Shown: positions 5,935 through 12,881 of the stretch, piece by piece | Numbering within the stretch: position 1 is the stretch's first letter | Layout: each line of letters opens with the position of its first letter | Source of the DNA: Macrostomum lignano | Lineage: Eukaryota | Reading direction: 5' to 3' | Assembly (NCBI GenBank): GCA_002269645.1 | Contig: NIVC01002833.1 | Coordinates: 1 to 64,000, forward strand | DNA: 64,000 bases | Notes under the pieces: generated by a model | Told to the model about the DNA's origin: nothing | What the model saw: only the letters and a program-made list of their open reading frames with translations | Databases searched by the model: none | Made by a program: the position numbers and the translations under genes

Positions 5935-8900
5935 GCGCCGTGTGGCTGGATCCGACAGCGGGTCCGCATCAGACCAGCATGCCGCAGCTGAGAGTCATTG
6001 GACAGGCCTGGCCTCTGCTGCTCATCATCATTGTCTCCTGCTCATTCGCGGCAGTGCTTGTCTGGTTCATGGTGAGGTCTAGCGTCATCTCAAAAAGTTT
6101 TGTTAGAATTTGTAGTGAATGGATTGAATTTAATTTTTGCTAACTCTTAGGTTATAGGGGGCATTTGGAGGATATAAAATGCGTCATTCAGTAATGAGTG
6201 ATAAAGAGATGAGTCAGAGGAATGAATCATTAAGGTATGAGTCAGAGGAATGAGTTATTGAGGAATGAATCCATGGAATGATTCAGTAAAATGAGCCAGA
6301 GGAATGAGTAATAAACCACAGTGGGAAACCCAATGACCAGATCATATGTTGCGCAAAACCCACCAAGTTTTATAGTGCAAAAGAATTCAACTACAGAAAA
6401 ACAGTGCACTGGCTGGGAGCTTTTCTTTACTAAACATGCAGAATCCGCCTCATCACTCTCGCCCCGCATCTTCCCACCCGCAGGAGAGGCTGAGAAATCC
6501 CCAAGAATTTCCCAGGCCTTTTGTTCGCGGCTTCTGGGAAGGCTGGTGGTGGGCTTTCATCACCATGACAACTGTGGGGTAAGGCGAGATCAGGGGCCTT
6601 GAGCCATTGTCTCGCATTATTTTGAAAAAAAAAGATGTAGCCAGAAATTCTGCGCGCTCGCTTATTTTACCTGCCTCACCGCTGGCGGGTAGCATTGATC
6701 GATCGCATAGTTGAGAGCCCGGGGGTCTCCCAGCCGTCCCCCCCCCACTCGAGAAATAAATCGAATCCATAGATTTCTGCTCTCCGTCAGCACCCACCAC
6801 TTATCCCTTCCATCCAGAGGGTTCTTGCCGATTTCTGAACAGATTAATAATTCATCAGACATCGCTCTCTGCTGTCGGATTGAGGCACCGACTCTGGTGC
6901 CTTGGCTCTGCTACCTGCCGTCTGCGACCGAGACGGCAGCGGAAACGTGAATAAAGAAAGCATTGAATAGACAGATTGAGAGCTGCTTCCTTTGCCTGCC
7001 TGCCGACAAAGAGATAGAAACGGAAGCCTGGTTTGAATGATGAAAAACATCATAAAAGTTCTAACTTCGTTTGGAAATTATTTTTCTATTAAACTACTTC
7101 GAAGTGTATCTGGGTCCTATGGGAAGTCATTTCGAATCCCTTTTCAAATTCATTCTGATATTTCCAAGTCGGCATATATCAAAGTGGAAGCATCTCACCA
7201 GGACCTTCCAGACTAGTTGCAGGTCATCAGAGGTCATGTGACCCCCCAGAATAGATAGTAAAATCAGTTAGACCTTTCAGACCAGGTGAAGGTCATCCGA
7301 AGTCACGTGACCCCTCAGAATATATGATACATCAACTAGACCTTTCAGACCAGTTAAAGGTCATCTGAAGTCACGTGACCCCTCAGAATATATGATACAT
7401 CAACTAGACCTTTCAGACCAGTTGAAGGTCATCCGAAGTCATGTGACCCCTTAGAGTAGATAATTAAGTCATCTAGACTTTCCAGACCAGTTAAAGGTCA
7501 AATTTCTGTTCTTTCCTATCGCAATCTTTCTAACCAGTCTCAGATCTAAACGAGGTCTCATGACCCCTCCTCCCATAACAATCCCCTCGATCCCGCAGCT
7601 ACGGCGACCGCTCGCCGAAGACCATCTGCGGCCGGCTGTTCGCCATGGCCTGGATCAGCTTCGGGCTGGTGCTCATCTCCATGTTCACCGCGGGGGTGAC
7701 CACCGCTCTGAGTCAGGGCGCTCAGACCGAGGAGGACAGCCGGTTCTTTCAGACCAATGTGAGCCCTGAGCTCAGCTTAAGAGAATGAGATTCAGTTGGC
7801 TGAAGAGAATGAGATTCAGGTGGCTGAAGAGAATGAGATTCAGGTGGCTGAAGAGAATGAGATTCCGGTGGCTGAAGAGAATGAGATTCAGTTGGCTGAA
7901 GAGAATGAGATTCAGGTGGCTGAAGAGAATGAGATTCAGGTGGCTGAAGAGAATGAGATTCAGGTGTCTGAAGAGAATGAGATTCAGGTGGCTGAAGAGA
8001 ATGAGATTCCGGTGGCTGAAGAGAATGAGATTCAGGTGGCTGAAGAGAATGAGATTCAGGTGGCTGAAGAGAATGAGATTCCGGTGGCTGAAGAGAATGA
8101 GATTCAGGTGGCTGAAGAGAATGAGATTCAGGTGGCTGAAGAGAATGAGATTCAGGTGGCTGAAGAGAATGAGATTCAGGTGGCTGAAGAGAATGAGATT
8201 CAGGTGGCTGAAGAGAATGAGATTCAGGTGTCTGAAGAGAATGAGATTCCGGTGGCCGAAGAGAATGAGATTCAGGTGGCTGAAGAGAATGAGATTCAGG
8301 TGGCTGAAGAGAATGAGATTCAGGTGGCTGAAGAGAATGAGATTCCGGTGGCTGAAGAGAATGAGATTCAGGTGGCTGAAGAGAATGAGATTCAGGTGGC
8401 TGAAGAGAATGAGATTCAGGTGGCTGAAGAGAATGAGATTCAGGTGGCTAACAGAATATCAAGATTGAAAATATTTGAGTTCAAGCTGAAGATTTCAACA
8501 CTCAGGGCATGAAAAAGAGTATTTACGCTGATGGGAATGAAGCTGGGTGCAAATCTTTCACTCTTTCCCTCATCAGTCAAACAGCAGATTTCTGCGCTTG
8601 AAACAGCGGCCCAGCTGGCGCATTTGTATCGATTGTCGGCCATGCATGCAAGCGGGACCGACTTTTATTGCTGCCGTCCAAGTCGTTAGGCGCCTTGCTG
8701 CACTGATTCGGCACAGCGAGTCCTTTACTGCCAATATGGACGGCTAAGGACTGGAGACAGACAGACAGACAGACAGACAGACAGACAGACAGACAGACAG
8801 ACAGACAGACAGACAGACAGACAGACAGACAGACAGACAGACAGACAGACAGACAGACAGACAGACAGACAGACAGACAGACAGACAGACAGACAGACAG

Positions 8901-11900: not shown

Positions 11901-12881
11901 CTGAGAAATGACCCAATACTGTCTACTTATTTTACATTTAGTGGTGTGAACGGAGCTTCTAGGCTGGATTGCGTTAAATTCAGAAGTGTAAGAATGAATT
12001 GAATCCTGCTATTATTACCTGCTAGTATGCTTCTGTCTAGAATGTCAAAATTGCAAATATTTTCACAGTTGAATCGCACTTTTCTGGGCAAAATGAGCTA
12101 AGGTAAACGATTCTCAATTGAGGTAAATATTTTAACTACAAGCATCCACCTCACTCCTTATTACGCAACCTACCTTAATCTACCCACCTTACTCCGCCAA
12201 CCACCCCACTCCGCCAACCACCCCACTCCGCCGCCCACCCCACTCCGCCACCCACTTTACTCCGCCACCCACTTCACTCCACCACCCACCCCACTCCGCT
12301 TCCCACCTCACTCCGCCACCTGAATCACTCCGCCACCCGCCTCACTCCGCCACCCCTCACTCCGCCACCCAACTCACTCCGCCACCCACCTCACTCCGCC
12401 ACCCACCTCACTCCGCCACCCAACTCACTCCGCCATTCGCCTCACTTTCTCTCTACCCAATTCCTCTGGCACAGTTGTGGAGCGCAACTGGAAATACGAC
12501 AGGCAGAAGAAAGAGGCGGAGTTCGGCCGCCAGCTGGACCTGAAGTCCTACTATCGACAGCACAACCGGAAATGCGGCGTCGAAGGCGGCGGCGGCGGCG
12601 GCGGCGGCGTCGGCGGCGGAAGCGCGGCCACCACGCCGACTGCTGGCGGCCAGTCGGGTGGGTCGGGCGGCTGCTCAATGTCCAGGCCGATCACCATCGA
12701 GACGCTGCACGCGGCGACGCTGGACGAAGCATCCGTGGGCGGTGGAGCGACGGAAGCTCCTGGCAATAACGGATCCGGGATAATCAACAATCGTCGGCTC
12801 TGGTGCCAGGAGGCCGGCAGCGACAGGCTCGACGAAGAGGCGGAAGGCGAGGCTGAAGCGGAGGAAGCGACTCCGATGTGA
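5935..12881 (+). CDS. GluR0/AvGluR1-like ligand-gated channel with K+ selectivity filter (5' exons not seen, probably outside the window)
   Basis: Exons 5935-6071, 6484-6578, 7599-7758, 8588-8684, 10726-11015, 11733-11892, 12475-12881 are all AG/GT bounded and phase-consistent. They give M1 ([23 protein letters not shown]), a pore ([23 protein letters not shown]), M2 ([27 protein letters not shown]), a putative S2 lobe, a third TM ([21 protein letters not shown]) and a Gly-rich tail. One in-frame TAA lies at 10767-10769. The 8684 donor is the least certain junction. Confidence 0.85.
7200..7500. repeat. ~68-bp minisatellite, about 4.5 copies
   Basis: Recurrent AGACCTTTCAGACCAG..GGTCATC.GAAGTCACGTGACCCC. 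Confidence 0.8.
7781..8450. repeat. 24-bp minisatellite, about 28 copies (intronic)
   Basis: Unit GAAGAGAATGAGATTCAGGTGGCT. Confidence 0.95.
8756..9205. repeat. (ACAG)n microsatellite
   Basis: Nearly pure tetranucleotide run. Confidence 0.97.
10265..10620. repeat. ~40-bp G-rich minisatellite
   Basis: GAGTGAGGTGGGTGTCTGACTGAG..GTTGATGTGG units. Confidence 0.85.
11030..11660. repeat. 40-bp G-rich minisatellite
   Basis: Unit GGAGTGAGGTGGGTTGCTAGATGAGGGTCTATAGGGGCAA. Confidence 0.92.
12185..12445. repeat. ~16-bp C-rich minisatellite
   Basis: CCACCCACCTCACTCCG units. Confidence 0.85.

Follow-up and report, generated by a model that had tools for sequence, protein, structure and literature searches.

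Within a 64,000-nucleotide stretch of the Macrostomum lignano genome (contig NIVC01002833.1 of assembly GCA_002269645.1, positions 1 to 64,000; hereafter the window), we identified a gene on the + strand at 5935-12881 that combines the plan of an ionotropic glutamate receptor (iGluR) with the selectivity filter of a K+ channel. On balance, we favor the view that this locus is the part of an M. lignano gene that runs from the first transmembrane helix (M1) to the C terminus, and that the gene belongs to an old animal family of iGluR-like subunits that have no amino-terminal domain, carry a canonical K+ filter, and would act as K+ channels gated by an extracellular ligand.

Gene model and predicted architecture

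The gene consists of seven exons with GT...AG borders that join in one reading frame, and it encodes, in order, M1, a pore helix with a K+ filter, a second membrane-spanning helix corresponding to M3 of iGluRs, the S2 segment of the ligand-binding domain (LBD), a third transmembrane helix (M4), and a tail rich in glycine and acidic residues (Table 1). Pfam profiles matched the M1-pore-M3 region only (Ion_trans_2, E = 5e-16; Lig_chan, E = 9e-8; plus Ion_trans), and a profile hidden Markov model (HMM) of the family matched single exons at E = 2e-20, 3e-20, 1e-6, 4e-6, and 3e-5, with no other match in the window. By these scores, the features lie far beyond chance. The exon translations are identical to the M. 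lignano protein P0001, which clusters with P0292 and P0293; the last exon is 100% identical to the C terminus of P0001 and P0293. A second, more distant group of M. lignano paralogs comprises P0002, P0003, P0007, and P0295.

An earlier reading of the gene, made from the letters of the window alone (the original prediction), had noted an intact TTVGYGD filter, an extra M4-like helix, and a presumed extracellular lobe of ~150 amino acids. We found the filter both in the window gene and in 120 of 120 relatives; the helix is present at the expected place and is conserved, as judged from the family HMM and from column conservation; and the lobe measures ~165 amino acids, reaching ~11792. The same reading had the filter region split across two introns. 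Two introns do divide M1, the pore, and M3 among three exons, yet only one of them interrupts the motif.

To describe the fold, we used a structure model of a full-length relative from the hemichordate Glandiceps (P0004), not of the window protein, generated by AlphaFold2 with an 86-sequence family alignment. The mean predicted local distance difference test score (pLDDT) was 83, and it exceeded 90 throughout the two lobes and the membrane domain. In a Foldseek comparison of this model with PDB, the top 50 matches listed were all chains of GluA1-4 or NMDA receptors comprising the LBD and the transmembrane domain (TMD), with E values of 1e-13 to 4e-12, ~440 aligned columns, and 13-16% identity. 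Profile-profile alignment (hhalign) of the family with bacterial GluR0-type proteins extended over S1-M1-P-M2-S2 (probability 99.9, E = 2e-34); these bacterial proteins match the Synechocystis GluR0 crystal sequence at 1e-75. When only S1 and S2 were used as the profile, the best PDB matches were the Nostoc GluR0 LBD 2PYY (3.8e-10) and Synechocystis 1IIT/1II5 (6.7e-9), followed by bacterial amino-acid-binding proteins; no eukaryotic iGluR LBD was among the PDB matches of this profile at E ≤ 10. The glutamate-receptor-like architecture suggested originally thus found support both in the alignment to GluR0-type proteins and in the match of the modeled relative to the LBD-TMD of AMPA and NMDA receptors.

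We also aligned the family profile with GluA2. The alignment (hhalign probability 90.7) stops before S2 but pairs the family motif S.FTA..T..L with SYTANLAAFL, the invariant S1 Pro with Pro478, and TTVGYGD with the MQQGCD segment of the Q/R site. The motif that the original prediction had placed at the position of SYTANL therefore falls there column for column: the family S-i-F-T-A-x-v-T-s-s-L lies over S-S-Y-T-A-N-L-A-A-F-L, with Tyr replaced by Phe, the final Leu kept, and the remaining positions different.

At the level of the family, the order of parts is S1-M1-pore loop-M3-S2-M4, and the AlphaFold2 model, Foldseek, and the LBD profile agree on a bilobed LBD of the periplasmic-binding-protein type. 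The window gene shows M1-P-M3-S2-M4, without an S1 found in the window, and its S2 exons match the family HMM. The original prediction had staked itself on an upstream lobe of the periplasmic-binding-protein type, and relatives, including a Macrostomum paralog, do carry an S1 lobe of that type. In full-length members, a signal peptide leads straight to S1, with no amino-terminal domain and in some with CUB and immunoglobulin (Ig) domains instead; the WE..Y motif of M4 is conserved by column across the family. A voltage sensor, tandem pore, or Kir cytoplasmic domain was not found; only the pore resembles the channels that have them, and it is flanked by S1/S2 and M4. Taken from sequence, the family is GluR0-like in its LBD and K+ filter and iGluR-like in its M4 and gate motif.

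GluR0 (Synechocystis Slr1257) and its cyanobacterial homologs share with the family a TXVGYG filter and a clamshell of the solute-binding-protein type, in which S1 precedes M1 and S2 follows the second transmembrane helix; GluR0 is the best sequence match of the family LBD (S1 to S2 align at the E value given above), and neither has an amino-terminal domain. However, GluR0 is prokaryotic and has only two transmembrane helices, whereas the family has a conserved M4 and the window gene has six spliceosomal introns. GluR0, which binds glutamate, keeps the Arg of its SITxER motif; this Arg is missing from the animal family. The family is also much expanded relative to GluR0, with CUB/Ig additions in some members.

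AvGluR1, from the bdelloid rotifer Adineta vaga, is an animal protein of the iGluR type with a K+ signature filter and M4, as in the family. The full eukaryotic iGluR architecture includes an amino-terminal domain, unlike family members, which pass from signal peptide to S1. AvGluR1 is described as having this architecture and as being gated by amino acids, and it reportedly favors K+ over Na+.

Metazoan iGluRs (AMPA/kainate/delta/phi, NMDA, epsilon, and lambda) share with the family the LBD-TMD fold, the order of parts, and M4 (Foldseek E ~1e-13), and the M3 gate motif, the S1 Pro, and an Asp four residues after the Q/R site align between the two. In contrast to these receptors, the family has a K+ filter rather than a Q/R/N-type loop and has neither an amino-terminal domain nor the canonical Arg, and outside the pore the sequence similarity is too low for the Pfam models Lig_chan-Glu_bd or SBP_bac_3. 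Shaker-type Kv and other tetrameric K+ channels have an almost identical pore helix and filter (WWA..TMTTVGYGD) and provide the best PDB sequence matches for the pore. Unlike Kv channels, the family has no voltage sensor or T1 domain; its pore is flanked by S1/S2 lobes and then M4, and by homology with iGluRs and GluR0, its membrane topology would be inverted relative to Kv.

The animal family and its shared introns

In the word-indexed protein search that found the M. lignano proteins, the matches ranked after Macrostomum were from hemichordates (Glandiceps, Saccoglossus, and Ptychodera) and from Clytia, a hydrozoan; bacterial proteins with SBP_bac_3 + Lig_chan + Ion_trans_2 came next. A search with the full-length Glandiceps protein as query returned 172 relatives. 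An exhaustive profile search gave 931 clusters (at 50% identity) with E < 1e-30, most of them extending along the profile from S1 to M4. Members with a named source are found among anthozoans, hydrozoans, and scyphozoans, in two annelids (Dimorphilus and Owenia), in hemichordates, and in Macrostomum, with many paralogs in Cnidaria. The T[TS]VGYGD signature was kept in 120/120 members examined, mostly within WWAFVTMTTVGYGD, and the consensus of the pore loop is WWAF[VI]TMTTVGYGD. In many cnidarian members, CUB and Ig domains are added at the N terminus (P0069, P0090, P0167, P0184, and P0187, all outside the window, are examples); some representatives reach 1,300-4,084 amino acids, with the channel module at the C terminus. 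We know of no iGluR with fusions of this CUB/Ig type.

The source names of the relatives are "uncharacterized," "potassium channel domain-containing," or evident mis-annotations ("Cubilin," "Kv subfamily F member 1"). We found no description of the family in full-text literature searches or in papers on iGluR evolution, within the literature that is open without subscription. The family thus appears to be unstudied, although its proteins are already present, unnamed, in public databases, and the poorly characterized animal lineage of GluR0-like channels that was originally proposed does appear to exist. In the accessible literature, the iGluRs discussed as having a K+ signature are GluR0 and AvGluR1 only, the latter treated as a single atypical receptor. 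A survey from 2010 found the combination of a binding domain with a K+ filter only in bacteria, and in a 2018 classification of metazoan iGluRs, the terms potassium, GluR0, AvGluR1, and selectivity filter are all absent.

To compare gene structures, we retrieved the genomic loci of members from Nematostella, Glandiceps, Owenia, and Clytia and derived the exact exons of each. All six introns of the window gene match Nematostella and Glandiceps in position and phase. Owenia matches five of the six, its after-M4 intron lying further downstream, and Clytia clearly matches at least three. The phase-2 intron that splits the filter has the same position and phase in four other phyla or classes. A 32-codon exon with the boundaries of exon b occurs in Nematostella, Glandiceps, Owenia, and Clytia, and a 21-codon counterpart of exon d in Nematostella, Glandiceps, and Owenia. 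From these common positions and phases, we conclude that the gene structure is older than the cnidarian-bilaterian split, which rules out contamination or recent transfer.

Table 1. Features of the window gene, with the introns compared between species and the tandem arrays within introns (a slash marks an exon-exon junction)
Feature	Position	Strand	Description
Exon a	5935-6071	+	end of S1-M1 linker and M1; internal, starts in phase 1; first ATG 5979; family HMM E = 3e-5
M1	6006-6071	+	in exon a
Intron after M1			VWFM/ERLRNP; phase 0
Exon b	6484-6578	+	M1-pore linker, pore helix, first half of filter; family HMM E = 2e-20
TTVGYGD filter	6568-6578 and 7599-7608	+	pore helix and first half of filter at 6532-6578
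Intron in filter	6579-7598	+	TTV-G/YGD; phase 2; splits filter Gly codon GG/C (TTVG/YGD); contains 68-bp tandem repeat
Tandem array, 68 bp x4	7202-7500		in intron
Exon c	7599-7758	+	YGD, M3, start of S2; family HMM E = 3e-20
M3	7624-7710	+	gate motif at its end, 7678-7710
Tandem array, 24 bp x28	7775-8457		in intron
Tandem array, (AGAC)x114	8755-9211		in intron
Intron before ITVINGS			FFQTN/ITVINGS; phase 0
Exon d	10122-10185	+	first S2 strand, with ITVINGSYE ("GS.E") motif
Tandem array, 41 bp x8	10261-10576		in intron
Intron in S2			STPV/LISDW; phase 1
Exon e (exon 5)	10726-11015	+	S2 core including GALIEHY (10797-10817) with conserved acidic residue; TAA inside
Premature TAA	10767-10769	+	in frame, within conserved S2 exon e
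Tandem array, 40 bp x16	11031-11684		in intron
Intron before M4			GADQ/AGQSS; phase 0
Exon f	11733-11892	+	S2-M4 linker and M4; ends in conserved WE..Y..P; family HMM E = 4e-6
M4 (third transmembrane helix)	11793-11867	+	in exon f
Intron after M4			NPNYK/FVERN; phase 1
Tandem array, 17 bp x16	12182-12446		in intron
Exon g	12475-12881	+	cytoplasmic tail, poly-Gly, acidic C terminus; stop TGA 12879-12881

Long open frames run through several of the intronic arrays (ENEIQVAE repeats are one case) and could misdirect gene calling based on open reading frames (ORFs). Elsewhere in the window, we observed an adhesion G-protein-coupled receptor (GPCR) gene at 40370-41917 (+), in two open stretches with a repeat-filled intron between them (Pfam GPS, 2e-7; 7tm_2, 2e-8 and 9e-10), and a CAP/cysteine-rich secretory protein domain in an open frame at 51547-52011 (-; Pfam CAP, 6.5e-12). 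Multi-kilobase GC-rich tandem repeats with very long spurious ORFs, including CLSVCLS repeats, lie at 22330-28235 (+), 43886-44892 (-), and 57900-59150 (+).

Counter-evidence and alternative readings

Several observations weigh against the reading we favor, some of them specific to this copy of the gene. Exon 5 of the window copy contains a premature stop: its TAA replaces the Glu codon, presumably GAA, of three near-identical M. lignano proteins (P0001, P0292, and P0293), which read ...NFTEDKESE or ...NFTEDEESE at this position (...FTEDKESE in the tblastn alignment to P0001). The first 45 nucleotides of exon 5 (10726-10770), overlooked in the original prediction, encode 14 residues and then this stop. 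We rejected, as the main model, an exon start at 10771 (AG at 10769-10770), which would avoid the stop, since the conserved phase-1 intron at STPV/LISDW fixes the start at 10726; the 14 residues that would be dropped are present in the M. lignano proteins and their paralogs. Apart from the TAA, we found no lesion in the window gene, and 12/12 splice sites are intact. Because the rest of the exons are identical to P0001 and the splice sites are intact, the TAA reflects either a sequencing error, an allele that is segregating, or a nonsense mutation that struck one of several copies very recently.

The S1 segment is a further point. Recovery of the upstream S1 exon, suggested with the original prediction, did not succeed within the window: no S1-coding sequence was detected in the 5.9 kb upstream of exon a, either by tblastn with eight relatives or with the family HMM on six-frame ORFs, and S1-only HMMs gave negative scores on stop-tolerant frame translations of 1-5940. 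S1-like peptides at 5758-5793 (MLFLDCVFRSYP versus MTFLDAVWRDYP), 5874-5900 (LFLDPIRTP versus LFIPVLETP), and 4990-5130 (TVW...RLIGV...LLLECS) were treated as noise; they do not share a reading frame, stops interrupt them, and the S1 HMMs give them no support, so we take them as chance matches, and a decayed S1 remnant at 4990-5900 is just conceivable. The acceptor of exon a sits at the position of the Owenia phase-1 intron "...TP/G," and the first 14 codons of the exon, upstream of the ATG at 5979, begin with 11 residues of which 9 match AVWLGPSAGPH of the paralog P0007. Exon a is therefore internal, and an S1 exon must at one time have stood before it. That exon probably still lies upstream. 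A 23-bp satellite of ~2.6 kb and more than 100 units (1189-3775, with an 18-bp array at 2454-2708) makes up most of the upstream sequence, so the missing S1 exon would need to be located on the far side of this satellite; in the Glandiceps gene, an intron of 10 kb follows M1, and introns of such size thus occur in the family.

Public M. lignano models also begin at an internal Met (MPQLRV) without S1, and an S1-less product may therefore be made. One of them, P0293 (UniRef A0A1I8GZG6), starts at MPQLRV and has a translated piece of intron 2 (window 6860-6947) in place of the exon for the pore helix and filter, which reflects either an annotation error or a transcript that lacks the pore. The intronic sequence in P0293 is slightly unlike the window and hence comes from another copy.

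Taken together, these defects make it possible, if somewhat doubtful, that the window copy is a duplicate or allele that is already dead or decaying, in which the stop cuts the protein short ahead of the S2 core and M4, S1 may be missing, and no functional channel is made even though the family makes one. A phase-1 intron conserved across four phyla fixes the start of the exon that contains the TAA, no S1 signal was seen upstream in the window, and the Glu of the three near-identical proteins points to intact copies, so that redundancy is available. However, a single base aside, all exons are 100% identical in protein to P0001 and every splice site is intact, which argues that any lesion is very recent, a segregating allele, or an assembly or sequencing error; the AG acceptor at 10769-10770 would moreover bypass the stop by skipping 15 codons in frame, but would delete a strand and helix of lobe 2 in the AlphaFold2 model. 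The window copy may thus be defective, as an allele or a duplicate, while the other copies of the gene are intact.

Other points concern the family as a whole, whose K+ selectivity, gating, and kind of ligand are predictions. Pfam fails to recognize the S1/S2 lobes (as Lig_chan-Glu_bd or SBP_bac_3), and only profile-profile and fold comparison revealed them. Across 86 members, the S1 Arg that holds the α-carboxylate of the ligand (R485 in GluA2; "SITxER" in GluR0) has no conserved counterpart at or near the aligned position. Because this canonical ligand-binding Arg is absent or variable, the S1/S2 LBD could be an orphan or structural domain. By the same token, a standard α-amino acid held in the iGluR manner is an improbable ligand. 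In S2, on the other hand, the acidic residue of the pocket, which would hold an amine of the ligand, is Asp in 67/86 members and Glu in 15/86 (82/86 together), Glu being found in GALIEHY of the window gene. It aligns with the Asp of "MFDRP" in GluR0, and its equivalence to E705 of GluA2 rests on that GluR0 alignment and on established knowledge. The S1 Pro (84/86), a Gly-Ser/Thr turn in S2, and a YG motif are conserved too. These pocket landmarks point to a clamshell that would be functional and hold a non-canonical ligand, perhaps an amine without an α-carboxylate.

With this in view, we regard it as unlikely that the members are K+ channels in which S1/S2 is no small-molecule receptor but a structural or assembly domain, a sensor of ions or pH, or a docking site for proteins, with the pore a leak or otherwise gated. 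Such a role would fit the non-conserved Arg, the silent Pfam LBD models, and the N-terminal CUB and Ig domains of many cnidarian members, which are typical of protein-protein recognition. Against it stand the clamshell fold, predicted at pLDDT > 90, the strong conservation of hinge and pocket landmarks over more than 80 divergent sequences, and the conservation of the M3 gate motif that couples LBD motion to the pore.

A signature filter does not by itself guarantee selectivity, as is generally known for HCN and some engineered channels, and an inverted iGluR topology with M4 could alter the geometry of the filter. We nevertheless consider it improbable that the channel is poorly selective among cations and excitatory like other iGluRs: the K+ signature is invariant in all 120 members; the pore differs little from the Shaker-type Kv motif, with the pores of Kv, KcsA, and MthK as its best PDB sequence matches; and GluR0 and AvGluR1, which have the same signature, were reported to be K+ selective.

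Bacterial contamination, recent horizontal transfer, or an ordinary 2TM- or Kv-type K+ channel (2TM, two transmembrane helices) with an unrelated C-terminal extension can hardly be entertained, even though bacterial GluR0-type proteins are the closest non-animal relatives, since the six spliceosomal introns, which had already been held to speak against bacterial contamination, are common to Nematostella and Glandiceps and five of them to Owenia, flatworm-style tandem repeats fill the introns, the neighbors (the adhesion-GPCR and CAP-domain genes) are animal genes, the family HMM recognizes the exons for S2 and M4, and the fold of the P0004 model resembles an iGluR LBD-TMD and not a Kv channel; these readings are excluded.

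Proposed mechanism and significance

For the family, we propose a subunit plan of signal peptide, S1, M1, re-entrant pore loop, M3, S2, M4, and cytoplasmic tail. Four subunits would assemble into a tetramer around a K+-selective pore, and the bilobed S1/S2 clamshell of each would bind an extracellular small molecule. Closure of the lobes would then pull on the M3 gate (S.FTA..T..L, the counterpart of SYTANLAAF), and the resulting K+ efflux would hyperpolarize the cell, making the protein an inhibitory ionotropic receptor. We infer all of these steps.

More speculatively, the family might constitute a previously unrecognized, pre-bilaterian class of receptors that are gated by extracellular ligands, K+ selective, and inhibitory, built on the iGluR plan and with a ligand other than a classical α-amino acid, and, of the animal lineages that survive, it might stand nearest to the GluR0-like ancestor of all iGluRs. 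We put this forward tentatively and hold it to be less probable than not in its entirety.

Fast inhibition in animals runs on ligand-gated Cl- channels, and to our knowledge, there are essentially no K+ channels gated by extracellular ligands beyond the bacterial GluR0 and the single rotifer AvGluR1. If our interpretation is true, the presence in cnidarians, annelids, hemichordates, and flatworms of a large family with conserved introns and an invariant K+ filter would mean that the design arose early in animals and is widely distributed among them. The public Macrostomum models of the window gene are fragmentary or wrong, and one of them swaps the pore exon for intronic sequence. The family could supply compact K+-based chemogenetic silencers, and its existence would open the search for a new transmitter or chemosensory ligand. 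With a GluR0-like LBD, a K+ pore, and M4 in one protein, it would also represent a living intermediate for the origin of iGluRs from a K+ channel fused to a binding protein.

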